The notes under the pieces were generated by a model, which searched no databases, had not been told where the DNA came from, and saw only the letters and a program-made list of their open reading frames with translations. A stretch of 64,000 nt of DNA from Mytilus californianus (lineage: Eukaryota): positions 64,356,001 to 64,420,000 of the forward strand of contig NW_026262712.1 in the NCBI RefSeq assembly GCF_021869535.1, read 5' to 3'. This document shows positions 11,038 to 52,191 of the stretch, in pieces (within the stretch, counting starts at the first letter, position 1; each line of letters opens with the position of its first letter). Position numbers and translations under genes: made by a program.

Positions 11038-12453
11038 ATGGATTCTCAGCAAGAAACTGGATATGCAAATTCTACAATATCAGGTAGCAATACAGACAGA
11101 AATAGCTACGAGCTAGTACCCGATAATAATTACCTCAGCCTAATTAAAAAATATCGTACACAAAATGAGGATAATGTGTATGATGTTATTCGCAAAGAGG
11201 AAGCAACTTTACAAAATAACGAAAGGGCAATTAAAAGGAAACCAACATGGAAATTATTAGCTATACTTTTTTGCACAATTTCTGTTATTTTAAGTGTTGT
11301 AGTTATATACCTTGTCACCAACATATTGTATATTAGAAGGTACTCGTGTTTATATAACGATAAATATCAAGCAGAACACGATACTGATTTTTCTTGTAAG
11401 TGCAAAAACGGAAATTCCGGACGATGTTGTGAAATAACTCCATGTGACAGGGTTATTTGCGAAAGCGGAAAATCCTGTCTTTATTCGGGGAATATAACAT
11501 TATGTGTTGGTGATTTAACTCAGGCGTCAGGCCTCGTTGACTGTAAATCGATCTGTGACAGTTCACCTTGTGGAAATAATGGTCAATGTATAGAAGTGGT
11601 CGGAGGGTACAAGTGTGTTTGTTTTTCTGGATATACCGGTGTTCTTTGCTCAAATTTAATAAATCCTTGCAGTCGTTTACCGTGCAGAAACAATGGAACC
11701 TGTACTGAGAATGGTTACGAATACAAGTGCACGTGTACAAAAGGGTTTTCTGGATCTGACTGTGACGAAACTCCATGTTACAATTCCCCTTGTAAAAATG
11801 GTGGATTATGTGAGAATACTGATAACGGACGTAATTGCATTTGTAAAAATGGCTATAGTGGAGAAGATTGTGAAATAACTCCCTGTAGTAATGGTCCCTG
11901 TGAAAATGGAGGATCGTGTTCAATTTGGGGAAATGTCTATCATTGCACATGCCCACTTGGTACATTCGGACTGAAATGTGAAAATATGTCATGTGCATTT
12001 CCAGAGTATAGACAAAAGGTTCTTTTACAAAGGACCTGCAACATCTTACCGTGTCCAAAACACTGGATGTTCAACATCGCTACGTTTTCGTGTTATTGGA
12101 TAAGTACCTACAAAGCTAACTGGAGAACGGCATATTTAACATGCCAGCGGATGCAACCACACGCGTCCTCACTTGTTTATATTCAATCTCACAACGAAAT
12201 TAATTGGCTCAAACAGTTTATAAACGAAGACATATGGGTAGGTGGACGTGTGTTTAACAATCAGTATCGGTGGCAGAGTTCCGAGTACAATTACACTATT
12301 AACAATCTGTCTGATTTATGGGCCAGGAATGAACCAAACGTATTTACAAATGAATACTGCGTACAACTTTGGAAAACAGCTGAAGGTTTACTTCTTGACG
12401 ATACACCATGTGGTTATGAAAAACACTTTATTTGCAAAACTAATCAACTTTAA
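11038..12453 (+). CDS. Type II transmembrane EGF-repeat / C-type lectin receptor (paralogue 2), single coding exon, 471 aa
   Basis: Colinear with 3336-4760 along its whole length (shared GRCCEITPCDRVICE, FNIATFSCYWI, WVGGRV.NNQYRW, CVQLWK, LLDDTPC); TM WKLLAILFCTISVILSVVVIYLV; CTLD with EPN motif. Confidence 0.9.
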   Translation: MDSQQETGYANSTISGSNTDRNSYELVPDNNYLSLIKKYRTQNEDNVYDVIRKEEATLQNNERAIKRKPTWKLLAILFCTISVILSVVVIYLVTNILYIRRYSCLYNDKYQAEHDTDFSCKCKNGNSGRCCEITPCDRVICESGKSCLYSGNITLCVGDLTQASGLVDCKSICDSSPCGNNGQCIEVVGGYKCVCFSGYTGVLCSNLINPCSRLPCRNNGTCTENGYEYKCTCTKGFSGSDCDETPCYNSPCKNGGLCENTDNGRNCICKNGYSGEDCEITPCSNGPCENGGSCSIWGNVYHCTCPLGTFGLKCENMSCAFPEYRQKVLLQRTCNILPCPKHWMFNIATFSCYWISTYKANWRTAYLTCQRMQPHASSLVYIQSHNEINWLKQFINEDIWVGGRVFNNQYRWQSSEYNYTINNLSDLWARNEPNVFTNEYCVQLWKTAEGLLLDDTPCGYEKHFICKTNQL

Positions 12454-15046: not shown

Positions 15047-15723
15047 TTAAATAGAAAGAGCATCTAAAGCTTCTTCTGGTATTCTACTGACATCAGACCC
15101 ATAGAATATTTCCATGGTAATATGTGTTTGTTCTGGGTTGTAAATACCAAAAACTGGCCACAGTGGGGCCTCTTTCGGTGAAACTACTAAGTTTTTGAAG
15201 TGAGCTACTACCTTTCTACTTTTTAAATCAACAACTATCCAATGCCTTTTAGACGTATCCAGCAAAAATCCATAGTGTAATTGAGAATATGATCTGATTG
15301 ATAAGGGAATTCGATCACTAAATGGATAATGACTTAACATTTGACCATTATGCCACCCATGAAGACACACTTTTCCACAAAGGTGGCATCCACTTCCACT
15401 GATTACCCATGCAAATGGACTACGGTCGTTTCTAAAACTTTTATCGATTACGTCATTCCTTGCAAGACCAATCTCAAATAAAACTGTCCGTCGAATTAGG
15501 CGCAAAATTTTGAATTTTATAGAAATTTCCCAATAAAACAGTCCAGGTTTGTTGAAAGATCGTGTTCCAATGGTTCCCGGAAATAAACGAAGTCTTCGAG
15601 TTCCACTTTTACTTTGAGTAGAGCCATATATTTGTTTTGTCGATTTCAAAGCCATCGTAAGACTGTCACGTGAGACTTCTACTGAGGGATGAGAAACAGC
15701 TGCATCAAATGCTATGCTTATAC
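15047..15723 (-). CDS. Terminal exon (B30.2 PRY/SPRY domain) of the minus-strand Filamin-B30.2 gene
   Basis: Acceptor ttttcag|GTATAAGC at 15724/15723 extends the listed ORF upstream as GISIAFDAAVSHPSVEVSRDSLTM (PRY-like FD..AH..L.VS.D), followed by SFNKPGLFYWE, FEIGL, YGFLLD, PLWPVF (SPRY hallmarks). Roughly half the residues match the 33163-33842 exon and the phase-1 intron position is the same. Confidence 0.85.
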
Positions 15724-18117
15724 CTGAAAATGTAATGACTTATACTTAAATTATGACAACGATATTCACAACTTCTAGTTAATTTATCTTTCACAGGAGA
15801 TAAACTGGAAATATTGTTCAACAAGTATAAACATATGTTAAGAAAACAAAACAAAATCTACATTATAATCGGAACAGAAAACAGTGTGACTTAATTAAAA
15901 AACGAAAAGGAAAACAAAGTTAAGAAGATACTGTACAGAAATCTTAGGATAAAGCAGTCTGAGCACCAACGAACTCATATGCTCTATACAGGTATGCAAT
16001 GCCTTCTTCAACAATTCAACAATGCTGGTTCAACTTCTTATTTTACTTTTTTTCTTTTATTTATAAGATAATGATTTTTTTTCTAAATCCATAGAGCGGT
16101 GATGCGTGTTGAGAAATGCAACCATTTGTTCTGACGTAAAAACAATTCTTTGTAATAGAGTTTCTAAAGTTGTTTTGTTTAATCCTACAAGCAGGAAGGG
16201 CGTATCATGGACGTAACTGTCAAATAATCAAAATACAACTTAACATTTTGTTTTCCTCAACAAGTCCCGCTAAAGGAATATAAGTACAATTTATTCGACT
16301 CAATATTGAGTCATGTGAAATATTTCCTGCCATTGTTAAAGACTTACAGTTTACGTCATTATACAACAAATTCCGCTCAGTTATAGTACCAGAATATTTT
16401 CGTGGAGAAAAGTCTATAAAAAAGAAAAGGTTTGTGTCAAATGATGATAGAATGTTATGACTGTATTTCTGCAAACATGTAAAAATTAAAACATCAACAA
16501 ACCTTGATACTGTGTTTATCAACTGTTTTGTCCTTTAGATGACAATTAGAATATATAGTTATGAATAATTCACTTAGTCTGCTCAATCTTTTTAGTCATT
16601 TGAAATTGAAAATTGAAAATGTTATGCCTGAAGAGCTGCGTTAAATTTGCTTCGGATGTGTACAAAATGTAATTACATGTTACATACAAAAAAAATCATT
16701 TAATTGTAAATTATTGTAATCCTAATTATATGAAGAATTATGACTTGTCAATTAACATTTGAAGGAAAGTCCAACACCGCTAACAACTTCCCTTTATAGA
16801 AGAATATAGTAAAGCATTTATTTTTTTTATGCCCCCGCCGTCACCGGAGTGGACACATTCTCCATTTATTTCAATTTATTTAATGCATATTGATGCCAAT
16901 AATAAACAACTTTGCTAGTTAAAGATAAAATTTACTTACTATCCGTGTTAAGTTGATCTCTGGCAGAGTATATCGGTGCATCTTGCAGGGACTCATCTGC
17001 AAGTGATATGAAAAGTCTGTGCTTATGGGGTTTTAACTAAGTATAGTATGGCATATATTCTGGCACAGCCTTTGTTGTTTATTGAACAGTTGTCCTATGT
17101 CATGCTTTAAGGTGCAGACATTTGCCTTGGAAGGGTCAACTATTGAGACAAACAGACGACTGACAATAAGAATGGAAGAGATAAAATTTATTTTCCTTCT
17201 TTCAACTTCAGATTTTTTGTATGGTAAATTATAAAGTGTATGGTTTTTGATTTACATTTTGATACGATTTGTCAGCGCACTGAATCGTTATATTTCTTAT
17301 TTATTAAAATATTTATATTTACTTTTTACTGCTGTGGTGCGTCTCTCAATCCAAACAAGTCTTCAAATGTTTTATTTTGAAGTAATCACAAAGTTTTATG
17401 TTCAAATGAGCAAAGCGAAGGAGAACATTATTATTTTTATTTCTTACTATTGTAATTTTACTACAGACTGTTAACAAGATGACATAGATCACACACTTCT
17501 ACTACTGCTCCTTTGACTGTGATATCGACTTTATCAAAGACATTGTCATAACCATAGATCACATGATTGATGTGAAGTGTCTAGAGCTTTCTTAGCTTTT
17601 TTTTTAGCTATCTCTATAGAACCAGGTTTAATCCACCATTTTCTACACAAGGAAATGCCTGTACCAATTCAGGAATATTTCAGTTGTTTTCCATTCGTTT
17701 GGTGTGTTTGAGCTTTAAATTTTTGCCATTTGATAAGGGACTTTCCGTTTTGAATTTTCCTTGGAGTTCGGTATTTTTGATATTTTACTTTTTTTTTCGT
17801 TTACTGTTGATGCGCTCTGTTAACTCTATTTCAAGTTTACATTATTTCGATTTTTGCAGTTGTATGTTCATGGATGAAATTTGATTTGGGTATACTTCAA
17901 TGAGAATGTTACATGGCCACTCACTCTTCACTAGGCATCGGATCCCAACTGACGTGGCTGCATATTTATACATCCCGCACAGTCAAAAGGACGCCCCAAT
18001 TAAACAAAATTTTTACTACTGAGCGGCAATAGTCCAGAGAAGCCAATATGTCTATTCCCCATTAGTCTAACATACTGAAAGTAAATGTAATTATAACTGG
18101 ATTATTTTCAAACTTAC

Positions 18118-18159
18118 CTAAAACAGTCAGACGTGAAGGTGGTTTTGTCGCCACAACAC
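18118..18159 (-). CDS. 42-nt linker micro-exon of the minus-strand Filamin-B30.2 gene (GVVATKPPSRLTVL)
   Basis: ttttacag|GTGTTG...TTTTAG|gtaagt on the minus strand; phase 1-1, keeps the frame into the terminal exon. Confidence 0.7.
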
Positions 18160-18336
18160 CTGTAAAATTATAAGATATGTTCTTAGAGTAATTCCGATAA
18201 TATTTTCGTTTGAATTTATTACATTTGAAATTTAAAAAGAGATCAACCTGTTACCTCTCTCATTGTACAATTTCATATAAAAAAAAGTATGTTTAGAGTA
18301 AAGTGACTGTTCAACTATCAGTTGTTAACTATTTAC

Positions 18337-18375
18337 CTTTGAAAGTTCTCGGTGTCCCACGATACAAAATATCAT
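18337..18375 (-). CDS. 39-nt linker micro-exon of the minus-strand Filamin-B30.2 gene (NDILYRGTPRTFK)
   Basis: ttttactttcag|ATGATATT...TTCAAAG|gtaaat; phase 1-1, open frame. Confidence 0.65.
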
Positions 18376-18731
18376 CTGAAAGTAAAACAGGAATATCATA
18401 TATCAGTTAAACAGATATTAAAAATGAGTTATTCTTAAAATTTCTTGAAAATTAATATGATTAGGAATAACGGGTACAGTACGCATCGTATTGGTCAATT
18501 TTTTATTGCGTCAAAAACGTCATTCTTGCGCCATCATAAAATCACAAAATTTCGAGTCTTTTGGTCATTCGTGACTCTTTTTGATCTAAATGATATAAAG
18601 TCTCGTATAACATGGTGTGAAATTAATTCAATATTTCATATGTACATTTCGAAGATTTACTTCTCTTCCGTACTTCTCGGAAAGAAATATAGGATATCCT
18701 AGTTAACAAGGTGGACAGCATTACTTGATTA

Positions 18732-19801
18732 ATAATATTAGTTACATAGTGTGCTAGTGACCTAATACGGTATATATGGGGTCAGTAAATTACATATGGG
18801 GTGAGAGCGAAGCTCGAATCCCCATATGGAATTTACTGACCCCATATATACCGTATTACGTCACTAGCACACTATGTAACGAATTTATCTTACCGACTAT
18901 CTTAACGTGTGAAATTTAGACTAGTGACCTATCAAAATGAGCACGTCTTCAATACCGTTAGCATTAAGAAACTACTTCCATTGATCCTACAAAAACAGAT
19001 GCCAACAATAACAACTTGTTAGGTTTAAATGTGTTTTATGAATTTATTGCAATCTTCATCATCAATTTCTTCGTCTGTTGAAACCTTTAAGATTTTTTCT
19101 CAGTACCGTTTTGTTTTTATAAAGGGACGTAACACCCCTACTAACCGTGTATAAAATAAGCCCCGCCTCCCTACTAACCTAATATGGAATATACATGGTC
19201 TCCACGCGGACGCTTTTAAACAATCATATTCCTCGAAATGTATAGGAAAAAGATCTCTTCCTATATTATCTAACCTCCTATACTTTCTATGAATATCATT
19301 AGTGAAAGGCGACCGCGTGGAGACCCTGTACATTTAATATGGGGTTAGTAGGGCGTGGTTTATTTTAATACACGGTTAGTATTGGTGTCAAGTCCCTTTA
19401 TAAAAACAGCACGAAGTTGAGGTAAAATCTGAAACGTTTCATCCGGACAACAGATGAAGAAATTAATGATGAACGATTGAAATAAATTCAGAAAACACAT
19501 TAAGAGCTAACAGGTTGTTATTGTTGGCATTTGTTTTTGTATAGACCAATGGAAGTAGGTTCTTTATATTGAAGACTAAATCACTTTGATAGGCCACTAG
19601 TTTAAATGCCAGAGTCATGTTAAGATAGTCGGTAAGATAAATTCGTTACATAGTGTCCTAGTGACCTAATACGATATACTTATATGAGGTCAGTAAATTC
19701 CATATGGGTTGAGAGCTTCGCTTCGCTCTCACCCCATATGGAATTTACTGACATCAAATATATCGTATTAGGTCACTAGCAAAGTGTGTAACTAATATTA
19801 T
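18732..19801. mobile_element. Foldback-type element: two arms of about 490 bp in inverted orientation, 86-bp spacer, each arm with an internal hairpin of about 60 bp
   Basis: 18732-19217 aligns with the reverse complement of 19304-19801 (e.g. gaatttatcttaccgactatcttaac, atgccaacaataacaac, ggtctccacgcgg); nested stem 18741-18801/18820-18880 (59/61 paired). Confidence 0.85.
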
Positions 19802-20711
19802 AAAAGGTATACATAGACATGGAATGGTATGGGACACCTTTTTGGAATGTCAAATATATCAATCGGGTGCAATTTCGCGGAGGTAGTATGGCATAGGGTC
19901 GAAATGTATATGCTAATGGTTCATAAATTTGTATCTTCTGTTTAGTTGTCTGTGTAAGCTGTGTACTGGTCTCGTTGTTTAATAATATGAATGATCCCAT
20001 GTGGTTTACATCTAAAGGTTTCATAGATTTTATATTTCTGATAGCTTGGAAATATATCAAAAGGTTAAAACTTTCCTCAAAAAAAATGAATGAGAAGAGA
20101 TTTTCGCAAACAACAATATATGAATGGGGACCTTTTAAACCCCAGCCAGACGTCTGAACCAGCATGTTAACAAAATAAACCTTGATATCAAATTTCAGGA
20201 AACTCCGATTTGAAATTCCTGAGAAAAAAGTGAAGAGAGGGACGGACTTTGAAATTGCTTTACATCTTTCTTCCAACTAAACGTTTATCTTGTATCAATT
20301 TTAATGTTATGCCATTCTTACACAAACACACTGGCTGTCGAGACTTCCAGTCCATCAGCCGTTTTATCGATCAATGTTTAGTATCGGTAAGTACATTAGC
20401 TTTGCATTCTACGGAGATGATTTCGACAAAAACTCCTAACATTTATTGTTTAATGATCTTTGAATTCGTGTTTAATTTTCTAACGAATACCATAAAGATC
20501 AGCAAAATCTACAGTCTTATCAAATAAACGGGTGAAATATGTAGTGTTTTATTAAAGTAAAGTTTTAACCGTATATTTCTATAGCGTTCCTAGTTAAATT
20601 AAAACTTTGGCATCATGTTATTCATAATATAGAATCTGAAAATGTTTCCCAATTTTATCAGCTTGCATGGCCTACACAAATTACATTAGAGTGGTAATCA
20701 AAATATTCTTA

Positions 20712-20714
<3 letters not shown>

Positions 20715-20743
<29 letters not shown>
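20715..20743. repeat. (TA)n microsatellite
   Basis: Uninterrupted TA run. Confidence 0.95.
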
Positions 20744-20746
<3 letters not shown>

Positions 20747-21069
20747 ATATCCTAAAAAATAACAGATGCCTTAGTTAAATAAATACCTGATTTTGCGGAA
20801 CGTGATGACATCAAGGCTGAAATTCTAGGTGATGACATGGACGACAACATCCCTGACAAAATACAGAAAAAAAAGTAGAAAAATGATACCAACCGGTGTA
20901 CCTGCAGTGTTTTCTGAGCCAAAACAATAAAATGTTTAAAATAAGAATAAAAGAAAATGTTTGAAATAAGAATAAAAGTAAATCTAGAGTATATTTCGAA
21001 GAGAAACCAAGACCTATAAACCAAAAAAGTCATCTAGAGGTTGACAAATATATGGTTTTCACATTATAT

Positions 21070-21376
21070 GATGATGATTGATGACTGTTTAACATCCAGT
21101 GGCAAATTGAATTCATTTTCAGGATGATAACACGTTAATTTGATGTGAATTGAACCCTGCTTTGTACTTGACTACAAGCTTAGTAGAAATTTCAATATGC
21201 TTTTTCACAAGGTAAAAGTCCAATGAAAGACACATCACTCTACCCAGAAACAAAATCCCAACTCCGAGCTATAGTCTTTGCTCTTTCGCCATCATGCAAT
21301 GTGATTATCGAAAAATTAGCAATTACCAACTTTCAAGTCTTTGGTTTCATCCGACAGGAACTCGAACCTATGACCT
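21070..21376 (-). mobile_element. tRNA-derived SINE remnant
   Basis: The reverse complement of 21350-21376 gives aggtcataGGTTCGAGTTCC (pol III B-box-like); the body (ccgagc.a.agtctttgctct..., accaa.ttt.aagtctttggttt) resembles bivalve SINE2 cores; the tRNA head is truncated. Confidence 0.5.
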
Positions 21377-21378
21377 TT

Positions 21379-21504
21379 GGAAATTAACTACTGGCAGCCA
21401 ATAACATGTACAGAAAATAATCACTGGCAGCACGTGACATGTACGGAAATTAACTACTGGCAGCCAATGGCATGCACAGCAAATAATTACTGGCAGCCAA
21501 TGGT
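21379..21504 (+). repeat. 33-bp minisatellite, about 3.8 copies with alternating A/B variants
   Basis: Units start at 21379, 21412, 21445 and 21478 around the core aa.ta..actggcagc. Confidence 0.85.
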
Positions 21505-22230
21505 AAAGCAAACCTCAACTTTGACGGTAATAAACTATACTTTAGACTCCTATGGTGTAATAGAGAGTACCTTGGTTCTTTATTATTGTCAAGAAAAAGA
21601 TAGTTTTACAAATAAACGTGTTAATATCAGAGCATACTTCAAAACTTTATATTTGAGTCTTACATACCTGTAGTCATTCTTGAAAAGCTTCTGGAAGGCA
21701 TGTCTCCTAGTTCAAAGAGAATAGAATAGAGACTGGAAACGGGGAATATGTGTAAACAATTTATGGGCATTAGTATCTTCATTTAAAAAAAAAAACTCAA
21801 TAAGCGATAATCGTTTTTTCACTTCATAATTCCAGAATAAATGGAATAATGTTGAATGTAAATGTGTTTATAACCGGCAAATATACCATGATCATTAATG
21901 ATATTTCAAGAAGTTTAATCTAAATTTATTTTCTAACAAATTAATTGAATTCAGACTTTCATCTTTAATTGTTGACTTGCGATTTCATGAACATTTATCT
22001 TTGTTTCTTCTCACTGCTTATAATGCTAATTATTTACAATATTAGTTACCAGTATATAGTCTTGGAGAACTCCTAAAAGAATGTTTTCCTACAAAAAAGA
22101 TATGCAAAAAAAGAAATGCATGAAAGAAAGGTTTCATTCGTCCATTGAAGCTATTAATACACAAACAAATATAGGATTGATTACTAGGTGTTGTGTCGGG
22201 GGAAATATATTACGGCAAACGGGGTTCAGG

Positions 22231-22440
22231 AGCGATATTTTGTTAACATATATTATTTACTTGTATGTTAAGCTAATAAAAACATTAATAACATATAGGG
22301 TTATTGCACTAATATGGCAGAATTTTGTTCCGAGCAGTATATCATACTACACGGCTTTCGAGTGCAACATGTTATACTGCGAGGGACAGTATTCTTAAAA
22401 ATTAGTGCAATAACTATTTATAATATATAACAAAATATTT
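22231..22440. mobile_element. Small palindromic MITE-like element
   Basis: atattttgtta...ttattgcactaat at the left mirrored by attagtgcaataa...taacaaaatat at the right. Confidence 0.55.
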
Positions 22441-22771
22441 CATCAACATTCATGATACTTCATCAAATTCCTGCAACTCAGATGATAACGCAATGTCAAT
22501 TTCTGTCACGTTATTTGTCTTTCGTTTGCTAGCAAATATTGTTTTACCCGGAACCACTCAAGTGTGTGAGAAAGTACAGAATGCAATATCGATCAAGATG
22601 CAATATTTCTAACTGAACAGGAATGCTCTTTTATACTGCATAAAAAGGGTGATCAGTAAACAAATCGGAAAATATTACATTCTTATTCTACAAAGAAATC
22701 TTCTTGAAATATTTGATACTACTTCGTTTATATGTCTAGATATATTGAAACTATCTACATTGATAACTTAC

Positions 22772-22984
22772 TTTTGTTGTAAGAATATTGTCCTAAAGCA
22801 CTGAATTTGTAACCTGCTGTATTTATACATTTCCCGTTTACCAGCACATGCGCAGTATATTTCCCTGGTTTTGGAGCAATGAAGTATACTTTGTACGTCC
22901 CATCTTTGTCTGTATAATCTTCTGCGTGAGGTCGTAATATATCATTGTCTGGGTCTAATATTTCTATACTTATATCTGCAGTTG
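22772..22984 (-). CDS. Filamin-type Ig repeat exon (C-terminal part) of the minus-strand gene
   Basis: tatttatag|CAACTGCA...AACAAAA|gtaagt, 213 nt, phase 1-1; translates ATADISIEILDPDNDILRPHAEDYTDKDGTYKVYFIAPKPGKYTAHVLVNGKCINTAGYKFS (filamin DGTY.V.F.P..PG.Y...V..NG signature); homologous to exon 29383-29607. Not in the supplied ORF track. Confidence 0.85.
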
Positions 22985-23958
22985 CTATAAATAGAATTTT
23001 GAATGATCGTACTTGGTGTTGGACTGAAATATTAAGTCTTGTTTACTCTGAGTATATAGTTGAAAGGAATACATTTCGTAAATATTGCAGATGTGTTTCA
23101 AAATTACTTTATAAAATACTGAATTGGAAAAGAAGGGATATTTTTTACTATGTGGTATGGGTTTTTCTCATTGTTGAATGCCGTACGGTGACCTATAGTT
23201 GTTAACTTGTATGTCATTTGGTCTCTAGTAGAGAGTTGTCTCATTGGCAATCATACGGCATCTTCTTATTTTTATATAGGTTGGATAACATAAGACAACA
23301 TTTCCTAGCAAAAACCAAGGAACTGTGCTATTATTGTTAATTTTCATCTTGACAATTGCTGAAAGGTCAGTCTTTTTGTCTATATGCACGAATGTATTTA
23401 TGTCCCGATGTCTTTATGCTTGTATGTATGAGTGCCCGATGTCTGTGTGCATGTCTGTCTGTCTGTCTGTAATTTTGTCTATAGGTTAGTATGTGTGTTA
23501 CAATGCAGAGCGAGTTATAACTTTTCCAATTATGACCGATAGACAACTTTATCATTAACAACTAAAAATCTTTCAGAAAGAGGTAAAAACTTTTTTCAAA
23601 AAATGATCATGTATTTTAAGATTGTTTTGGTTTCCACAGCAACGGTATCTACACCATTAAAAGCATAATTCCTTGTAGGTCGAACATAAAATTGATAAAT
23701 TAAGCAATTATTAAGAAACTAAGGTTCTAAGGAAAAGTTTACCTTACATATGATTTTGGATATTCTTTTAAGGTCCCTTTTGTTCATATCGCTCCTAACG
23801 TTTCTACGTATTAGAACATTCCTGGCTATCAATTGTTTATGTTTGAGCGCTCCTCATGAAGTTTAATCAAGAAGAGCGCTTCGGGCGGACGAACATTATA
23901 AAGTGTGTTTTTTATTTAAAAATCAATGCATTTTAAAAACGTTGTTAATGAGTCTTAC

Positions 23959-24151
23959 CATCGTATATTGGGATAAGTTCATCGTTATAAAGTCTTATTG
24001 TAAGGACAATCTTTTCTTCGTCTACTGCAGCATCACTTGGCACAACAACTGTGTTTGGAATACAAATGGCTATTGATGTCGGTTTCTTGAACAAGTCTTT
24101 TGATCGTCTATCCATCTCTGTGATTGAGGATCGAAGCTTGCTTTTGTATTC
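23959..24151 (-). CDS. Exon encoding a short helix plus the N-terminal part of the filamin repeat, minus-strand gene
   Basis: acatttag|GAATAC...TACGATG|gtaaga, 193 nt, phase 0-1; EYKSKLRSSITEMDRRSKDLFKKPTSIAICIPNTVVVPSDAAVDEEKIVLTIRLYNDELIPIYD aligns loosely with paralogue exon 28536-28716 (IP..V...D...D.E...I...LYN). Confidence 0.75.
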
Positions 24152-24746
24152 CTAAATGTTTTGATATAAACTATATTAAAATGTTTTGGTGTTGTAGTCA
24201 ATTAAGTAAAGCCATCTTCCGTAAAGTTAACCATTGTTCCTTTTTTTATTTTCAGATACGTGTATATAGTAAGGATTTAGAGTTCAAGATAATTGTGCGG
24301 ATATTGAGTATATATAACACCAGTGTTTTGATATAAATATCTATTCTATAAAGCATTATGTGTATTGATTGTTATAGCTAGCCTTTATAAAAAGAACTAA
24401 TAATGGAGTCAGTTAGCATGTCCAGGCGTTGTCGTAAAGGACAAAACTGAAAGGGTATGCCAAACATGAGCTGGTAGAACTTTCCGTACAACAACAAAAT
24501 AATGAATTGTCACAACCTTTTATCGAACTATATATTCTCTCAGTCGTATTACATTTGCGCCAATTTGAAAGAAAAAATCCAAAGTTGCATTTGCACCAAT
24601 GTTGAAGTACCCAGGTAAGGTTACCTTTTACCATTAAAGAGTTAATTGGTGAACAACGGGTAAAACCATTATGAATGTAGAAGCGTCTCTGTGTTCCCTT
24701 TGAAGACTATTGATACTTCAAACTTATACATATCTTTTTGCGTTAC

Positions 24747-24782
24747 TTGCTTCAGTTTTGGTGAAGCCTTGCTGTTGGTAAA
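24747..24782 (-). CDS. Candidate 36-nt coding exon (FTNSKASPKLKQ) of the minus-strand gene
   Basis: gtttccttatag|TTTACC...AAGCAA|gtaacg, phase 0-0, in frame with the flanking exons; no homology support. Confidence 0.4.
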
Positions 24783-24902
24783 CTATAAGGAAACAAAAAC
24801 AATAGCCTTGAATCATTAAATTACATTTTATTTAAAGTTTTAGTCCTGTTTTACATGTGGATGTAAATAGTTTAGATGGATAAACAAATTTTACGAACTT
24901 AC

Positions 24903-24911
24903 CCTGTACAT
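24903..24911 (-). CDS. Candidate start (ATG TAC AGG, MYR) of the minus-strand gene
   Basis: ATGTACAGG|gtaagt with a strong donor. The chain 9+36+193+213+39+42+677 = 1209 nt is fully in frame (402 aa). An alternative start is the Met in MDRRSK within exon 23959-24151. Confidence 0.35.
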
Positions 24912-26091
24912 ATAAATTTCGTCCTGAAATTCATGTGTCAGTTATAGGGAAATATATTGTAGCAAAGAATTTTCTGCAAAAAATGAACCGAGATGAACTG
25001 GAGACATATTTTGAATGTTTATTTATTTTCTAGAACTTTGTATGCTTAAATTATATTTAAATTTTCGCATTTAAAGAAAACAAATTCATACTTTTTTTAT
25101 ATTAATTGAAATTGTCATAAACTTTAATTGCTATTTATGTTCAACGTGTTTTTTTTTTCCGAATCAATTAATTACCAGTTAAACATCAATAATAAAAAAG
25201 TAATTTATCTAAAAACACACCGATAATGAAATTAAACATACCCCGATAAGATGGCAAGCAATGGGTAAAATTTCTTCTGATTGAAAATTCTGATTCTCCC
25301 CTTTCAGTGTATCACTCTTTGCTTTAAAAACAAAGCATATTGAAATCAATACACAATAAAACTTTTTAAGGTATTATTTAAAACCAAGATAATCAACAAA
25401 GCTCCCAAATACCTTCACTTTTTGTTGGGTTGTTTTTAGGCGTGAAGGTATAGTTTGTGATTCCTTTCAGCATAACAATAAGCTTAATAGCAACGTGTAA
25501 TTGATACATGGAAATCGAACTCGAAAAGTCAAACAACAAATTTTTGGCAGATAATCTAGATCGGCATTTATTAGTACAGAACTCTTTTCAAAGGTAGGTA
25601 ATTTTGAAAGTGCATATACGTCCGTTATTTACAAAAAAAATGTGTTACTGCTAATTATTTATTTTCTTTATTACGTATGAAATGAATAGACAGAAAAATA
25701 AAAGATACATTTATTTTGATTGCATTAATAGAAAATTTTAAAAGGCAGCAAATGTCTATAATTTTCATTTCTAACACTCAATGACGCCATTTTATCTGCT
25801 ATTTCTTAATGCCTGCTTAGTTTGATTACACGCATAGATTTTGATTGGATTTATATAATTTTTTTCGAAACAAATTCAAACTCCCTCTGAGGCAAATTTG
25901 ACCTAAGAAGATATGTTGTTACTTATAGGTAATTTTGATTATAGCCTCTCGTGTCAGAGTATTTGAACTTCTTTGCATTTTGGCTTTTAAAACAGATTGT
26001 GTTTTACTTTTTAATTTGATATTTTTTTCCTTCTAAAGGTCAAAATGTCAACAGCAACTATTTGATATTTTTTTTCCTTCTAAAGGTCAAA

Positions 26092-27183
26092 ATGTCAACA
26101 GCAACTTACCATCCGGTGATGACACAACCATTTCGCGTACAAAGTAAAACTTCCATCCGGCCGCAAATAGAGCATGTCCGGCAGAAGTTCCTTGAATGCT
26201 ATGTCTGTAATGAGGATTTCAATGAGACTGACCATGTACCTAGAACTCTGCCATGCCTTCATTGTGTTTGTGAAGTTTGCATGGAGTCTCTGAAAACACG
26301 TGATTCAGTAGTGTGTCCAGAATGCAACGAATCGCACCCGGTTCCAAATGGAGATGTGAAGAATTTTGAAAAAGATGGTTGCAGAGGATATCTTGTTAAT
26401 TATTTACAGGTACAAGCGAACGAAACTGCAATAACATGCGATGAATGCACGAATAAGCGACGCGGGACTCATCGATGTAAAGAGTGTTCACAATTTCTCT
26501 GCAATGATTGTACCGATGCCCACATGAAAACAAAAGTCACCAAGAGGCATGAAATAACCAATGTTAACGATCTCAAAGACTGCACGATAGAAGAACTGCA
26601 AGCAATTCAACGTTGTTCGGTCAAAGGTCATGAAGATCAACAGTTCCAATATTACTGTGTTTCGAACAGTTGTGATAAACCGGTCTGTGCTCTTTGCGCT
26701 GTCCAGTTCCATTCCGAAAGTAAGGGACATAAGCTACGAACTCTAATGGACGTATATCTGGAAACAAAAAGAACTGTAGACACTTTGGTATCAGAGGTTA
26801 AACACAAGCAACTGACAGCTGAGGACACGTTGAATATTGTAGATGGAATAATCTCCAACCTTGACGACGTTCAAGAAAAAATGGTCGAAGATATTGAAGT
26901 TGCTTTCGGTAAATGTCAAAAGAAATTAGAAGAAAGGAAAGAAGAAGTAAAAAACGAGCTGTTGAATGCAGTAAGCGTAAAGAAAAAAAGACTTCAAGAT
27001 CAGTTAAGCTCTCTCAATTTTCACAAAGGAAACCTAGACGACTCCAACGAATTTGCAACATGCGTGTCAACATATGCAACCCCTTCAGAGTTTATGAACT
27101 TCAAAGACAAAGTAATCGATAGGTTAAAAGACATGAACACTCGCCATTTTGATGTAAATCCACATGATAATGCTGATGTTCAG
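26092..27183 (+). CDS. TRIM protein, first coding exon: RING, B-box1, B-box2, coiled coil
   Basis: C3HC4 RING (CYVC...LPCLHCVCEVC...CPEC), B-box1 (CDEC...CKECSQFLCNDC..AH...H), B-box2 (CSVKGH...YYC..CDKPVCALC..H..H), then a heptad-rich region; acceptor ttctaaag|GTC at 26085/26086; donor CAG|gtaaag at 27183 (phase 0). The ORF-track start at 26062 is intronic or duplicated sequence. Confidence 0.92.
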
Positions 27184-28535
27184 GTAAAGGAATTTTCATA
27201 CAGTCTATGCATGTGTCGAATTTAGTTCGATTCCAAACAAACAATTGTTGTCGGCGTAGTCATTTATTTTTCTACTTATTTTGTATTTTATTATGCATGC
27301 ATTATCAATTAGAATATTGATTTTATTTCTTTTGTGGAATGTCTTTTACAAAACAAAATGGTATATTCGTTCTCATCTCTTTTATAAATTCTATATCTTT
27401 TTTAATCCCTCTACAGTTTTGATCTGGTCCACTGTTGCATGATATATTTAAATGTGAGAGTAATATTTCAAGTCTTGTCCTTTACGTTGATTCGAGTTGT
27501 AAGATCAAAGCCACATTTTGGGGTTAACCACAATATAATGATGCACGATGCAGTAAAATTTCAAATAACGAATTTGAAACATGTGTTTCAACATGTTCAA
27601 CTTTTCAGAGAAAATAAAATGGATATAATTTCAGTTCCCAAATTTTCCTGCCACTTTCTATCTGTTACTGAAGCGCCTTCTGAGATCAGATAACAACAGG
27701 AGAAGGAACTAACTTTGTATTAACATTTCTCCAACATAAAGTGAAAGAGTTATGCCGCTTATTATGTATTATTTCAATTTCATGCAATTCGGGTGTGAAA
27801 AAAGAATGTGTTGGGTATGCTGTATGTGTCAATGAGACACAGAAAAAACATTTACCTCAATGTAAAACCAACCAAACGACACAAAAGAACCAAACTACAT
27901 CAAGAGATCAACATACGATCTTCAAGAATAATCGATTGTCTATTCAGTGTGTATCTTTCCACAAAAGACAAAAACACACATTGAGATACAATAAGAGGCA
28001 ACAAAAGACGAGGTGCCTAACTACTAGATGTTGCATACAAGCCTTCCAGGGCATGTTATTTTACATTCAGGAGGATGATTATATGCATTACCTATTGTCT
28101 GGTTCAGACAAATAAGTTATTTTATGAGACATATTTTATTTTATGAGACACATTTCATTTTAAAATGATAAAGTTTATTTTAGTTTTGATTGTGTATACT
28201 TGTTGAACAGTAATTCAATAACTGTTGTAAAGACGTTCAATAAAATTTCCTATTATGCTTATTAGAAACAAATGAAGATGCTAAGGGTGCAACCAAAATC
28301 TCTTAGTCGAATACAGACAGAAATAGACAACATTCCACAAACAGTACACAGAAAAATAAGGATTCGAAAACATTAGAGGACTTGTAATATTGGGTACTCC
28401 GGATGGATCAGCAGACCATGTCCACTTGATGACACCGTTTACGGAAAATAATTGCTAAGACTTCTTTGGTATCTTTCGCCTCTCTTTTTCTTTCAAGTAA
28501 TTTAAATCTTGATTAAATTTCAATTTAAATTACAG

Positions 28536-28716
28536 TTTCACCAGGACAATATGGGAGAAGATTTCAAGCATTTTGCCAACAATGTTGGAAAGATATGGTC
28601 TTCTTCACTATATATACCCAAAACAAATGTGACATTGAATGACATTCCAGCTGACGTAGAGGACGTTCCAATTACCATCTTTCTATACAATATTGACGGT
28701 GATCCTCAAGTAGAAG
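28536..28716 (+). CDS. TRIM exon: linker plus N-terminal part of the filamin repeat
   Basis: aattacag|TTTCAC...GAAG|gtaaaa, 181 nt, phase 0-1; FHQDNMGEDFKHFANNVGKIWSSSLYIPKTNV...ITIFLYNIDGDPQVE. Confidence 0.85.
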
Positions 28717-29382
28717 GTAAAAGTAAACTATTTTAGTCATTGTACGTTATTCATATGTTATTAAGAAGAAAAATAGTTGTTTTTTCTTATAAAATATGCG
28801 TTAGTTTTCGATGTTATGTAATGCTATGGTATTTATCTCGACAATGATATCTCGACAATTTTGTGGTTTTGTATGTAATATTTGCTTTAAGAGGTAATTG
28901 AGTGACAAAAATCCATCCCGGTAAAATTGAATCCCAAATTCCCGCTGAAATAATGTGTCCGTTCTCGCATCACCATATAATTAAATCCCGAATTCCCGAC
29001 GATTTAACTGGCTATTCCCAAATTCCCGCGAATTAAACGTCTCAATCCCGACGTCCAGAAAAAGGTCCTTCTGCCCCTCTTATGTAGACGAAAAAACGTC
29101 TGGCGTTCCAAGTATCTTTGATAAAGTTTTTTTTTTTATAAATCTAAGGTTCCAACTCCTTCAGGGAAAGATGACCTCAAACGGTTTCAACTATTCTGTC
29201 TCGGTCTTCAGAATCCGAATGTTTAGGTGTAATAGACTCCCTTAACTTTATTCACTAGCGGTATTTGTTGCAAATTAATTCAAAAAGAGATTCAAGTGCC
29301 ATTGAAAAGTACTTTTAAGTTTGCATTTCTCATGAAAATAGTATCTAACGATTTACATGTGTATGTTATTTTTAAAACCAAG

Positions 29383-29607
29383 GTGGTGTCGACATTCGAG
29401 TTGAAATTGAAGATCCAAATGGAAAGATTCACCGACCTACAGTTGAAGATTTTACTGCAAAGCAAGGATGTTATAAGGTGTACTTCATGTCTCAAAAACA
29501 TGGGAAACACAAGGCAACAGTTTTAATCAACGGTGACAGTATAAATCCTGATGGGTACAGATTCAATGTCATCCACCATGGTGCTGATAGACAATCTCTT
29601 ACTTACA
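29383..29607 (+). CDS. TRIM exon: C-terminal part of the filamin repeat
   Basis: aaccaag|GTGGTG...TTACA|gtaagt, 225 nt, phase 1-1; GGVDIRVEIEDPNGKIHRPTVEDFTAKQGCYKVYFMSQKHGKHKATVLINGDSINPDGYRFNV matches the filamin Ig-fold consensus. Confidence 0.85.
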
Positions 29608-29658
29608 GTAAGTCTGTATTAAGTGTATATTTTCAAACAACTTCGGCCAATATCTTAA

Positions 29659-29885
29659 AGGTGGTCTCATTGGGGTCTAAGCGTGACCCGGGATTGCCGA
29701 TTTTTTGTAAGCGTGACACGTGAAAGTCAAATTATTGTGCCGTGAAAACGGGAAATGAAGTCTAGCGGGACACGGGAAATTACAAAAAAATGAGAATTGC
29801 TTACGTACATAGTGTAAGCGGGATACGGGAATCTGACAAAACAGTAAGCGGGATCCGGGATCAGAACCCCCCAATGAGATCCCCT
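29659..29885. mobile_element. MITE of about 230 bp with imperfect TIRs
   Basis: Left aggtggtctcattgggg versus right ccccaatgagatcccct, in a TTAA-like context; internal cggga repeats. Confidence 0.65.
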
Positions 29886-30173
29886 TAAAGAAACCATCGA
29901 TTAGTTGTGGGAAGATAAATCTAATTTCCTTAATTTTAAATAATCAAACGTATAAAGGAAATTTTGCAGCATTTTCTTTCACTACATACCTCTCTTTGAC
30001 GTTATGAACTCATTCTCAATAACTTTTACAATTAAATGAATTTACGTTTTCTTTAGACTTTACAAATTAACCATGATGTTCACTATTATCGCATAGTTTT
30101 TTTTAAATTTTCTATGATATTCCAAATGTAAATTATGTGTCCATGTCTTCATGTCTTTCTTCTTGATTATCAG

Positions 30174-30233
30174 GGTCGGCAAGAATCCCAGATACACCTC
30201 AACCTAGAAATATTGTGTCACCTACAAACTCTG
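30174..30233 (+). CDS. TRIM 60-nt Pro/Ser-rich linker exon (RSARIPDTPQPRNIVSPTNS)
   Basis: cttgattatcag|GGTCGG...CTCTG|gtaagt, phase 1-1, open. Confidence 0.75.
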
Positions 30234-30317
30234 GTAAGTTTTATTTTACTCAAACACTTTTATTAAAGCGTATAAAAAATGGTAGTCGATACCAAAGGGC
30301 AATCTAAAACAACCAAA

Positions 30318-30780
30318 AACAAGAATGTGTCCATAGTACACGGATGCCCCACTCGCACTATCATTTTCTATGTTCAGTGGACCGTGAAATTGGGGTCAAA
30401 ATTCTAATTTGGCATTAGAATTTGAAAGATCATATCATAGGGAACATGTGTACTAAGTTTCAAGTTGATTGGACTTCAACTTCATCAAAAAAGGCTGTTT
30501 CACACAATCCCATTTTCATGTTCAATGAACCGTAAAATTTGGACCAAAACCCAAATTTGCCATACTTTTTAGAAAGTTCTAATCATAATGACTATGTATG
30601 CAAGTTACAAGTGGATGCAACTATAACTTCATCATAAACCACCTTGACCAAAAACTTTAACCTGACACCGGACAGACGGACGAACGGACGGACGAACGAA
30701 CGAACGAACGAACAAACGAATGGACGCACAGACCAGAAAACATAATGCCCCTACTACTATCGTAGGCGGGGCATAAAAAA
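30318..30780 (-). mobile_element. pearl/DINE-1-like non-autonomous element
   Basis: (ACGG/ACGA)n microsatellite next to the terminal tgcccc...ggggcataaaaa hairpin; the other end is acaagaatgtgtccatagtacacggatgcccc; same subfamily as 47877-48100. Confidence 0.75.
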
Positions 30781-32363
30781 TAGACAACACTTCTGCTCTA
30801 TGAAATTCGAACGACACTCCGCAATGCACTTTGAATGAAACCAAAGATTAAGTAACAAAAACCGCTGCACTAACCGGGGTAACTCATGTTTTCTAGTAGG
30901 GTAATACGTTAATTGATCATAGCGGATTGGTAAATGTCTCATGTTCAACCATCTAAGACGTCCCAAACTTCACAAACCATCCTTACATTTAATTTGTTTA
31001 ATCCTGTCACTTGATCGATCGTGAATGTTAGAAATAAAAACACGGGTGTCTGTACAAAAAAGAGTAAACGGTAAACATTACAAAAACAACAAGAAAATAA
31101 AATAATACAACAAACAACAAACAAAAACCAAACAAAAAGAGACACTTATTCCTTTCTATAAAACTAGAGATGAATTGAGGTGCTTCAGTCGGAAAGCAGT
31201 TCCAGCTTCTCTAATGATACCCGCGTGGCATCTAGTAACGTCAACCTAATCATGATACATGTATATAATTAAGAACACATGACTTGATAACTTTCTTACA
31301 AGCAACAAGCAACTATTAAAGAAACCATGATAGGAAACGCAATTCATGGAATATCATATCAACTTTGAGATTTATACATATGGGTTCTGTTGGAATGTAG
31401 CTTAAGAGAAATTGAATGTTCACAATGAGAAATTCGGAATTGTCTCTTTGTCTTAAGGCATCTCAACCGACTCTCAACGTCAATTTCTATATATAATTAA
31501 ACATATAAACCAGACTTAACTGTACCCAAAGTATCCTTATTTCATTTAAACTCTTATCTTTAGTTAATTTTCCAAGAAAACATCATAAAGACCTATAATT
31601 GTCAAGGATTTCCTATTTAATAAATGTTTAATAGTGGAAGTATTTGTTGCAATTCTGAGTAAATTATCAACACCTACTTGCCTTATCATCAGTTTATAAC
31701 AAATTTAAAAGTGTTATTTTCCTATTACTTAGTATAGAAAGTTATTTACACATTAAGAATAGTATATGTGATAGACAACAATACGTTTGTCATTTAGATA
31801 ATGCTGGTACAAGATACATGTAGTATGAGTGTTCATAAACCCGTAACATGTATCAATTCTGAACATATCAACATCCTCATAGCCTTAACCCTTCAGGAAA
31901 TAGCGTCTACGTCTTTTTTTCACGTTTTGTTTATTGTTTGGCATAATCCTCTCATCTACATAATATTTTCAATTTTGCTTTCAGTTTATTGATTAATGTT
32001 TTGGTATTTCTTAAAGAAGTTTTGTTGGCAATGTTACGGTTGTCAGTTATAAAGCGTGGCCAGCAGGATTATAGATGCAACTTGTACATGCTCAATCAAA
32101 AGGTTAAAACTGGAAGTTTTTGGTGTTGAGATCCTCAAAAACGTGCTTTTGGCAGAGTAAATTTGTAAAATGAATCGTTTTTACGCGTCATTGTTTTCAA
32201 TGCCAAAGTTTCTGTTTGTCATAAGATGTATTATAGTTCTTATAAAGCTGTGTCTAATCTTAAATGGACGCTTTCTAAACTGTATATAAAAATAAGAGCA
32301 GATATTCAATGTAGCAGATAAAAATGCTGCAAAATTATTCATTAATCTATTTTTGAATTACAG

Positions 32364-32420
32364 ATGTTACCATTGTGGGTCGTATTACTCCTAGAGATAT
32401 TATGCATGGAGATGTTAACT
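32364..32420 (+). CDS. TRIM 57-nt linker exon (DVTIVGRITPRDIMHGDVN)
   Basis: gaattacag|ATGTTA...TAACT|gtaagt, phase 1-1, open. Confidence 0.75.
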
Positions 32421-33162
32421 GTAAGTATTCGATTCAGATCCCGATACATTGTATATAATACTATATAGTATTAGTTTTTGTCATTGTTGAAGAACATACG
32501 GTGGCATGTAATTGTTCACATTTTTGTCTGTTGGTCATTAATGAATAGTTTTCTCATTGATTTGTTTATTCTAATTTAATTTGTTAACCAAAAACTTGTT
32601 TGTGCATTAATTATTTGATTATTTTATCTTTTTTAGCTCAGTGTTAATTCTTTTTCAATGTTGACTAAGGTATACAAATACGGTAATCAATCAATGGACT
32701 TCTCCAATCTGGCAGTAAAACCCTCGTCCGTTTAGGTGTGGGGGGTGTATAAATGCGCAGCCACGTTAGCCCGTAAAAATGGCGAGATACAAACACAACA
32801 AAGAAAAAAAAATCAAGGAACACGAATCCCGTCAGAAACTGGAGATTAATGTAGATGTTTCAGAAGGATCAGCAGGTTCTGTTCTATATAGTGACACTCC
32901 CCTCGTGACGCGAGACAAAAATGCGGTGACAATATATAATATACTGTATGTTTGGAGAAATGCCTGATAAATTTTGCTGAAAGGAGAAGAGTGAAAATTA
33001 CAAAAAATATATACTTCTTCATAAACGCGTTATGTGCTATTATATATAGTCGCGTTAAATGTGTTTCTCTTTCTCATAATAAAATAACTTGAAAGTATTG
33101 AACTTTAATATTCAAATCCAAACTCAAAATAAAAGTTTTAATATTTTTATCCATATTTGAAG

Positions 33163-33842
33163 GTGTCGACATTTCCTTTGATTCATCTGTTGCCCATACA
33201 TCAATGGACGTATCCGGCGATGAAAAAGTGATGAAAGTGAAGACAATGAAACAGCGACATGGAATTAGCTTCAGGGAACCAGAGGCAGGACATTTCAGAA
33301 ATTATAAAGGAACGATTGCAACTAAATCTTTCAACAAGCCTGGCCTGTTTTACTGGGAAGTTGTAGTCCAGTACAAAATTTTGCGCTTAATCCGACAGAC
33401 AATGCTTTTCGAAATGGGCCTTTCGAGAATTGATTGCGTTGATAAGCGTTACACTGTGGATGCATTTCCGTACGCATGGGCAGTTAGTGCACGTGGGTGT
33501 CATATATGCGGAAAGGTATGCCTACAGACATGGCATAACGGCCAACTAATGACACATAATCCTTTGTCAAATCGCACACCAACGCCTCCAACTATGGTAG
33601 TTAGGCTTCATTATGGATTTCTTCTTGATTCAACCAAACGTCATTGGATAGTCGTCGACCTGAAAACAAAAAAAGTCATCTTCCATTTTAAAAACTTGGT
33701 TATCTCCGAGATGTCTGATCCTCTGTTCCCAGTATTTGCCATATACAACCCAGAACAGGTTCAAGCTTCGTTGGAACTTTTGTCTGGAATGAATATTACT
33801 GGAATCCCAGAAGAAGCCTTAGATGCTATAGTTATTACGTAG
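33163..33842 (+). CDS. TRIM terminal exon: B30.2 (PRY/SPRY) domain
   Basis: atatttgaag|GTGTCG gives CVDISFDSSVAHTSMDVSGD (PRY) continuing into the listed ORF with FNKPGLFYWEV, FEMGL, YGFLLD, PLFPVF. Spliced CDS 1092+181+225+60+57+680 = 2295 nt = 764 aa, in frame. Confidence 0.88.
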
Positions 33843-34944
33843 TTATTTCTATTGGAGTGTAGTAGATTATTACTGACTTGTTTCTGAAATGATAATTAGT
33901 AGTCTACTCAACGAATTAGAAAAGTGTGACTGATCGATTGTATTTACTTTTTCAAAATGTACATTATTTTTCATATTAAGTAGAGCAAAATTTATTTGTA
34001 AAATAGTTTTTTCATTAAAAATATCATAACAAACCGCTACTTTGAGTCTGTAACCACGATACGAAACCATCAATCATATTTTATCATCCAGTTAGATATA
34101 TGAATGAAATTAGATGTGGGGTATACTTCAGTGAGGTAATCTAACATACATCACAGTCACAACAACTACTTAACTTGTGAAAATCATATACATAATAGAA
34201 AAACAAAGGGCATGGGATATCCATCCATGACACAAAATCAGTACATTCACAGCAAAAAACACACAAAAAGAAAAGGAACAGCGCTTTTATTGCTGTTCTT
34301 CATCTCATGGCTATTTTCCCACATAAGCCGTTTTCTAAATTGAGTTTGGTCTGCTATAGTAGCTATAAACATGTAATTCCATTGCAATATCTGGTTAATA
34401 TAAAAAAAGAAGATGTGGTATGATTGCAAATGAGACAACTCTCCACAAGAGACCAAATGACACAGAAATTAACAACTATAGGTCACCGTACGGCCTTCAA
34501 CAATGAGCAAAGCCCATACCGCATAGTAAAGTCTGCTTTTGATGTAAAACTATCAGGGCCAAGAACTTAGTTAGAAAGACTTTTTTTAGTTTAGAATATA
34601 TCATGATACATGTATTCATATGTATAGAATTTCAGTTAATTAATCCATGGTCAAATTCACCATATGATTGTGCTGATCGTAGAGTATCTATGACTCTTTT
34701 TTAAAAAAATCTTGTTTTCAACGAAATAAAATAATGAAAATTGAAAGAAAAAATTATTTTAAATCGGTTCTATTATTATTGTGTTATTTACACATTACAG
34801 CTTTGTTCTTATAATATAAAAATAAGGAGATGTGGTATGATTGCCAATGAGACAACTATCCATCAAAGTTCAAATGAAGTGGATGTAAGCAATTATAGGC
34901 AACCGTACGGCCTCCAACAATGAGAAAAACCCATACCGTATAGT

Positions 34945-35016
34945 ATGTTGTGTTGTTACACCACTTTCCAAAGAGTTTTCATGTTGTGTTGTTACACCAC
35001 TTCCCAAAGAGTTTTC
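34945..35016 (+). repeat. 36-bp tandem duplication
   Basis: atgttgtgttgttacaccactt(t/c)ccaaagagttttc twice, 1 mismatch. Confidence 0.9.

Positions 35017-51216: not shown

Positions 51217-52191
<975 letters not shown>

Follow-up and report, generated by a model that had tools for sequence, protein, structure and literature searches.

A head-to-head pair in the mussel Mytilus californianus: a filamin–B30.2 TRIM gene and an expressed, conserved paralogue without the RBCC module

Two related genes lie head-to-head in a 64,000-nucleotide stretch of the Mytilus californianus genome (NCBI RefSeq assembly GCF_021869535.1, contig NW_026262712.1, positions 64,356,001 to 64,420,000 of the forward strand; in the following called the window, position 1 being its first letter), and one of them raises the question what a TRIM relative does that consists of the recognition part only. 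The plus strand of this AT-rich DNA of animal type carries a 6-exon TRIM gene (26092-33842), whose product of 764 amino acids (aa) has the order RING/B-box/B-box/putative coiled-coil–filamin–PRY/SPRY. The minus strand carries a paralogue lacking the module of RING, B-boxes plus coiled-coil (RBCC), which extends from an ATG at 24911 to 15047 and is referred to as the short gene. An earlier interpretation made from the letters alone (the sequence-only reading) regarded the two as an old inverted partial duplication, kept under selection as an effector plus decoy or sensor pair. Our analysis shows that the short gene is real, expressed, conserved and descended from the adjoining TRIM; it is neither a pseudogene nor a mis-modelled TRIM. 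As an overall reading, we consider it rather probable that the old RBCC-less copy is a stand-alone, non-catalytic binding protein with a partner of its own.

Transcription and structure of the short gene

The short gene comprises 12 exons, 11 of them coding, and its open frame of 479 codons bears out the earlier statement that it stays in frame throughout. The encoded protein (479 aa) is 100% identical to RefSeq XP_052064750.1, annotated as "uncharacterized protein LOC127704656" of Mytilus californianus. As RefSeq models of the gene, uncharacterised as they are, already exist in five Mytilus species, the sequence-only reading went too far in seeing here the best candidate for an undescribed system. 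A literature search revealed no paper on the short gene, on filamin–B30.2 TRIMs or on TRIM pairs of Mytilus.

Public RNA runs were compared against positions 22730-28729 of the window; runs X1 and X3 originate from one study and X5 from another. The short gene was represented by one spliced contig each in X1 and X3 (1761 and 1786 nt, respectively). The exons of these contigs (25379/25340-25242, 24973-24903, 24151-23959 and 22984-22772) show GT..AG at every joint on the minus strand, and a loose end runs into 22087-22058, where the next small exon starts. Furthermore, all 12 exons are contained in an independent mRNA contig of 1928 nt (L013, from SRR13891812), which has a stop upstream of the ATG. 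The minus-strand gene is thus transcribed, a point that had been left to be checked.

Some exons of L013 are 99-100% identical to the window, others 93-94%, and about 175 bp directly after the stop codon (window 15034-14859) are skipped. These mismatches may be due to a divergent allele or a close species, or to an intron or indel in the 3' untranslated region (UTR). An interspersed repeat of about 130 bp is located in an intron of the short gene (23144-23277) and has additional copies of 74-90% identity in and after the TRIM gene (34398-34530, 34814-34945 and 32459-32559). The repeat draws RNA contig and read depth in the thousands from elsewhere in the genome, which could be mistaken for expression of the locus.

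Exon 1 (25242..25379, like all following exons on the minus strand) is non-coding and is present in the X1 and X3 contigs and in L013, its joint 25242|24973 being GT..AG. The RNA-supported exon 2 (24903..24973) contains 5' UTR with in-frame stops and the ATG at 24911, and it ends with ATG TAC AGG|GT at a phase-0 donor. Because several stops precede this ATG in frame in the transcript, the short protein starts with Met-Tyr-Arg and leads straight into the filamin exon; the start codon proposed from sequence was therefore the right one. Exon 3 (23959..24151) encodes a short N-terminal segment and the first half of the filamin domain, exon 4 (22772..22984) its second half, both with joints seen in RNA. 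The last exon (15047..15723) encodes the PRY/SPRY (B30.2) domain and the stop codon, and is followed by a 3' UTR to about 14481 in L013.

Between these domains lie seven linker exons (span 16348..22088), which were derived from the M. edulis model, have AG/GT throughout and are all present in L013. They are located at 22088-22050, 21706-21668, 20852-20787 and 18375-18337 (39, 39, 66 and 39 nt) as well as at 18159-18118, 16996-16940 and 16413-16348 (42, 57 and 66 nt). All of them are in phase 1 and together they encode about 116 residues rich in Ser, Arg and Pro; the first is confirmed by the RNA loose end at 22771. The TRIM carries two such micro-exons (60 and 57 nt) compared to seven in the short gene. 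Two phase-1 micro-exons had also been claimed for the minus-strand gene, for which the phase was correct, but five small exons had been overlooked. The seven exons are symmetric, 39-66 nt long and contain a repeating Ser-x-Arg or Ser-Pro-Arg-like motif, which suggests at the sequence level that the linker grew by exon duplication. Isoform X2 of M. trossulus omits the 39-nt exon equivalent to 18375-18337; at least one linker exon is therefore a cassette exon.

Absence of the RBCC module

A profile hidden Markov model (HMM) built from the RBCC module of the TRIM and nine relatives was run, with filters off, against all stop-to-stop pieces in the six frames of the 64 kb. The sole match was 26092-27183 on the plus strand (E 3e-184); no other RBCC-coding sequence was detected in the whole 64 kb by this six-frame search (next best E 2). 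Likewise, a tblastn-type comparison and the HMM revealed no remnant of an RBCC exon between 24152 and 26091. The sequence-only reading had described the 1.2 kb between the two start codons as leaving no room for RING and B-boxes. This interval (1.18 kb) indeed holds no RBCC coding sequence, but it is not empty, since it harbours the two 5' exons of the short gene. A splice to a RING exon is not seen either, as the mRNA contigs begin with non-coding sequence that has stops before the ATG, and the HMM gave no further match within the window. By descent the minus-strand gene is a TRIM-like relative; lacking the RBCC module, it is not a TRIM.

Homology, age and selection

Downstream of the RBCC part the two genes correspond to each other. 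In tblastn comparisons the last exons (33156-33836 on the plus and 15730-15050 on the minus strand) matched at 54% over 227 aa (E 1e-88; 55% over 202 aa by BLASTP), the second filamin exons (29388-29627 and 22979-22758) at 46% over 80 aa (E 2e-18), the first filamin exons (28599-28724 and 24076-23951) at 38% over 42 aa (E 2.5e-4) and the last micro-exons (32378-32425 and 16390-16343) at 56% over 16 aa. Intron positions and phases agree as well: the introns following the two filamin exons and the one that precedes the last exon are in phase 1. Both the homology of the post-RBCC exons with their shared intron position and the B30.2 identity of roughly 50%, estimated by eye before, are in line with these values. 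Apart from a short repeat common to both genes, similarity at the DNA level is confined to the last exon (65%). The duplication must therefore be old, and for the same reason its breakpoints are not recoverable.

A maximum-likelihood tree of the B30.2 last exons placed the short type and the TRIM type as sister groups (99/96). Support for the short-type clade is 100/100 and for the TRIM type less firm (92/91); these separate clades are a further indication of an old duplication. The stem of the short type is long (0.53) compared to that of the TRIM type (0.13), and among 19 positions fixed differently between the types, the derived state is found in the short lineage at 11 and in the TRIM lineage at 2. 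This indicates that the short copy was altered markedly after the duplication and conserved thereafter.

The ratio of nonsynonymous to synonymous substitution rates (dN/dS) between the window and M. edulis is 0.058 for the whole TRIM (dS 0.32) and 0.072 for the whole short gene (dS 0.30). Within the latter we obtained 0.044 for the filamin part (dS 0.28), 0.084 for the linker exons (dS 0.30) and 0.082 for the B30.2 exon (dS 0.32). Both genes are thus under strong purifying selection, and gene-wide fast evolution was found in neither of them. The M. edulis comparison was used because dS is saturated between the paralogues and against relatives of 72-81% identity, for which dN/dS values were dropped; between the short type and its 72-73% identical relatives dN amounts to 0.14-0.19 with saturated dS. 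Separate clades, eroded DNA similarity, the missing RBCC exon and the low dN/dS values fit the proposed old inverted partial duplication, and the values for both genes, far from 1, support its maintenance under selection.

Conservation in Mytilus and relatives in other bivalves

A profile search for post-RBCC relatives led to a 480-aa "uncharacterized protein" of M. edulis (starting with MYREYK). Its 11 coding exons, mapped on the M. edulis locus and transferred to the window, have AG/GT throughout and give the open frame of 479 codons, and all 20 splice sites are conserved. The M. edulis locus is collinear, comprising the 764-aa TRIM and the 480-aa short gene head-to-head, followed by the same neighbour with epidermal growth factor (EGF) repeats and a C-type lectin domain; introns are about 70-80% identical. 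Accordingly, the pairing is conserved in a related species, as far as a check within the genus can tell. Short orthologues of 465-483 aa are found in M. trossulus (two isoforms, one without the 39-nt exon), M. galloprovincialis and M. edulis. Further models comprise 544 aa in M. coruscus and 368 aa in M. galloprovincialis.

When the last exon of the short gene was searched against 1.84 billion representative proteins, only 90 matches were obtained. The long proteins among them (730-880 aa) belong to bivalves and combine RING, B-box and filamin with the same C-terminal domain; they come from Solemya velum, Argopecten irradians (named "TRIM45-like" by NCBI) and the unionids Potamilus and Sinanodonta. 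Given this distribution, RBCC–filamin–B30.2 represents an uncharacterised type of TRIM that occurs across the bivalves. Other samples contain two more last exons of the short type, with 72-73% identity and a shared intron acceptor. TRIM-type last exons show 79-81% identity, and one of them was obtained from a run series that also yielded a short-type sequence. The nearest relatives of both types outside Mytilus lie on contigs of 1-3 kb, relatives of the RBCC exon (64-80% identity) on contigs of about 2-2.5 kb. Members from large ENA contigs (L002-L005) fall outside the duplication and are ordinary compact TRIM genes; the DNA inspected upstream of their RBCC exon, about 4-7 kb, contained no partner gene.

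This divergent type of B30.2 domain is found in other settings, too. M. edulis XP_071163921.1 (P0004, 1258 aa) combines RING and B-box with a Pfam SPRY match at 680-810 and this B30.2 type at 1055-1252, and a Haliotis protein (P0032, 417 aa) carries it together with an N-terminal CARD domain.

The TRIM gene and the domains of both proteins

RING, two B-boxes and the coiled-coil region of the TRIM are encoded by a single exon on the plus strand (26082..27183, coding sequence from 26092), which comprises 364 codons, ends with a phase-0 donor and has an orthologous exon in M. edulis. Exon 2 (28536..28716) encodes the first half of the filamin/Ig domain with a phase-1 end; its GT..AG joint was seen in three RNA runs, and it aligns to TRIMs from Solemya, Argopecten and unionids. 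In X1, X3 and X5 the TRIM contigs include exon 1, which is joined from 27183 to 28536, with a further splice to 29383. The second half of the filamin repeat is located in exon 3 (29383..29607; Pfam Filamin E 7.6e-5), into which the RNA loose end at 28718 continues. Linker micro-exon 1 (30174..30233, 60 nt, phase 1 to 1) was predicted from sequence by a splice-site and frame scan; its AG/GT is kept in M. edulis, and its inclusion yields the annotated 764 aa. Micro-exon 2 (32364..32420, 57 nt, phase 1 to 1) is homologous to 16413-16348 of the short gene. The last exon (33163..33842) encodes the PRY/SPRY (B30.2) domain and the stop codon.

The RING shows the canonical C3HC4 spacing C-x2-C-x14-C-x-H-x2-C-x2-C-x11-C-x2-C at residues 35-79. 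Several Pfam RING models match it at E 1e-4 to 2e-3, under their gathering scores, and the Solemya relative clears the zf-C3HC4 threshold. The B-boxes (about 115-155 and 173-217) reach 26.7 bits with Pfam zf-B_box (cut-off 24.1). By eye, the stretch of about 225-364 has a charged, heptad-like character and represents a putative coiled-coil. Judged by these RING and B-box motifs, the plus-strand gene appears to be a regular member of the TRIM/RBCC family.

With the filamin model PF00630 (cut-off 26.9 bits), exon 4 of the short gene scored 29.0 bits and residues 1-145 of the protein P0133 28.4 bits; TRIM exon 3 scored 23.9 bits and stays under the cut-off. The match spans profile positions 40-88 only. 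An AlphaFold2 (AF2) model of the full-length short protein shows an Ig beta-sandwich at 36-130 (predicted local distance difference test, pLDDT, 60-83), a disordered region at 132-252 and the B30.2 domain at 255-479. A filamin repeat is thus predicted in both genes from sequence comparison.

Pfam SPRY and PRY gave no match on the last exon of either gene, so that the B30.2 assignment rests on profile search and predicted fold. More distant members of the same family do match SPRY or PRY. A family profile searched against PDB sequences matched the B30.2 domain of MID1 over its full length (E 2.7e-9), and also BTN3A1 and TRIM21. The AF2 model of the last exon of the short gene has a pLDDT of 90.8. 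The top Foldseek matches of this model were all PRY-SPRY domains (TRIM25, TRIM65, TRIM21, TRIM7) with probability 1.00 and TM 0.6-0.78. As modelled, the last-exon domain would adopt the bent beta-sandwich fold of solved PRY-SPRY domains.

Origin and function

How could such a gene have arisen? As the RBCC module is a single exon, a recognition-only copy is easily produced: an inverted TRIM duplication may have broken in intron 1, or exon 1 may have been lost soon after. The copy would then have recruited two new 5' exons in the interval beside the TRIM promoter, expanded its linker, with seven small symmetric exons in place of two, and fixed its own B30.2 substitutions before coming under strong purifying selection.

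It is very improbable that the RBCC-less model is an artefact, with the RBCC exon located elsewhere or a full TRIM producing the short form as a minor isoform. Truncation at the 5' end can affect transcript contigs, and the M. coruscus model (544 aa) is longer at the N-terminus. However, this additional part results from reading through the 5' UTR and is not rich in Cys and His, two independent mRNA contigs have in-frame stops before the ATG, RefSeq lists RBCC-less models of 465-483 aa for four Mytilus species, and the six frames of the 64 kb contain nothing RBCC-like besides TRIM exon 1 on the opposite strand. Least probable of all is a decaying or non-functional duplicate that is still transcribed, a view already contradicted by the data. 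The long stem branch of the short-type clade could be taken as a sign of decay, and so could the missing Pfam match of its B30.2, although Pfam misses that of the TRIM, too. Against decay stand the intact frame of 479 codons with 20 of 20 splice sites kept in M. edulis, the dN/dS of 0.072 overall and of 0.084 even in the linker exons, the intact last exons with the same intron position in the two relatives of 72-73% identity, and the B30.2 fold predicted with confidence.

The main alternative concerns function. According to the sequence-only reading, one bidirectional promoter serves both genes, the TRIM being an E3 effector and the short paralogue a decoy, sensor or dominant-negative form. 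We regard this as unlikely, its functional part being somewhat disfavoured by our results. TRIM contigs of X3 and X5 extend to a 5' end at 26082 and those of the short gene to 25379; the interval in between (25380..26081), a candidate bidirectional promoter region, thus measures at most 702 bp and lies within the criterion of <1 kb for divergent pairs. Also in favour of this reading, X1 and X3, which belong to one study, contain the two transcripts at similar depth, the layout is kept between M. californianus and M. edulis (dS about 0.3, one genus), purifying selection acts on both genes, and the recognition part of filamin and B30.2 is common to both. On the other hand, X5 contains the TRIM contig at a depth of 16.6 without a contig of the short gene, a weak point since contigs show presence rather than absence. 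The distant members L002-L005 have no partner in the stretch inspected upstream, and gene-wide dN/dS values of 0.06-0.07 give no sign of the rapid evolution that decoy/sensor pairs commonly show. Identity between the two B30.2 domains is only 54%, and as the type-specific conserved residues are mostly derived in the short copy, a changed rather than a shared specificity is indicated. Moreover, the coiled-coil is the means by which TRIMs dimerise. Without RING the short protein is unable to transfer ubiquitin, and without B-boxes and coiled-coil it is unable to enter the antiparallel TRIM dimer or lattice, which makes a classical dominant-negative effect via co-assembly unlikely.

We therefore lean, if slightly, towards the short protein serving a partner of its own rather than regulating or mimicking the TRIM. 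This is favoured by a B30.2 domain that diverged from that of the TRIM and was then frozen, by a linker specific to the lineage, by the low dN/dS and by run X5, in which only the TRIM is seen. The protein would hold its ligand via the B30.2 domain, perhaps via the Ig domain, too. The head-to-head layout would then be mainly a relic of the copying, possibly with shared regulatory DNA.

Several points weigh against a stand-alone protein with its own partner. Filamin-type Ig domains can dimerise, and a contact with the filamin domain of the TRIM itself is possible. The contig ends are not mapped transcription start sites, which makes the distance given above an upper bound. In a sample of about 6% of the raw RNA reads of run X21 neither gene was covered. 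The contigs of the distant short-type relatives are too short to show RBCC loss or pairing, and the choice between an own ligand and a regulator of the TRIM is one that we infer. Rather improbable, and more so than the effector and decoy arrangement as such, is a cooperating pair throughout Mytilus and perhaps other mytilids, in which the short protein would gate or redirect the targets of the ligase via its phosphorylatable linker and diverged B30.2 domain. Paired immune receptors would then have a counterpart in animals. If the neighbours do act together, they would be a useful model for the regulation of E3 ligases by RING-less TRIM relatives.

Comparison with known systems

TRIM-like genes that arose by TRIM duplication and loss of RBCC parts are known, e.g. 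FSD1/FSD1L/FSD2, Brat and NHLRC1/Malin, the FSD genes being relatives of the MID or class I TRIMs (Marín 2012, PMC3503706). As in this class, RING and B-boxes are gone from the mussel paralogue, and the C-terminal recognition domains of the canonical TRIM persist. The mussel gene differs in that filamin plus B30.2 are retained, the gene still lies head-to-head with its parent and a disordered linker is encoded by seven exons. FSD1 likewise has an Ig-like module (FN3) followed by B30.2, but it keeps the coiled-coil, whereas the short gene lost the whole RBCC. The short gene is a bivalve-specific addition to the TRIM-like class.

The RFPL genes of primates encode B30.2 proteins related to TRIM27/RFP without B-box and coiled-coil. 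They are similar in being stand-alone PRY/SPRY proteins of the TRIM lineage, and PDB 2fbe (RFPL1-like PRY-SPRY) was among the structural matches. In contrast to the short protein, RFPLs have an N-terminal RDM motif and no filamin domain, and they are not related to it by descent. TRIM45 (RBCC–filamin, class X) and TRIM2/3/71 (RBCC–filamin–NHL, class VII) share RING, two B-boxes, coiled-coil region and one filamin repeat with the mussel TRIM in the same order; after filamin, the latter has PRY/SPRY instead of nothing or NHL repeats, respectively. We know of no RBCC–filamin–PRY/SPRY combination among the vertebrate classes C-I to C-XI.

In plant pairs of NLR immune receptors, which consist of a sensor and a helper (RGA4/RGA5, RRS1/RPS4), both partners keep the signalling core and the sensor has an integrated decoy domain. 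Like these, the mussel genes are divergently oriented paralogues with a short shared interval. However, one mussel partner lost its catalytic and assembly core and nothing foreign was integrated, so that the analogy would be positional only. TRIM repertoires of bivalves are very large, poorly understood and thought to serve innate immunity. The locus is a clean, dated example of how the TRIM family yields a non-catalytic offshoot, an orderly case of a known evolutionary route with a gene that is already annotated.

Neighbouring genes

Two intronless open reading frames (ORFs) with EGF repeats lie on the plus strand of the window. The ORF at 3336-4760 (474 aa) encodes several EGF repeats and a C-terminal C-type lectin domain according to Pfam. 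The one at 11038-12453 (471 aa) has several EGF repeats, too, with no Lectin_C match at E <=0.01. The fetched M. edulis stretch ends inside one such EGF gene at a matching position. A 322-aa ORF at 51226-52194, also on the plus strand, matches Pfam Pkinase (E 2e-31) over the N-terminal two thirds of the kinase domain and is presumably one exon of a kinase gene.

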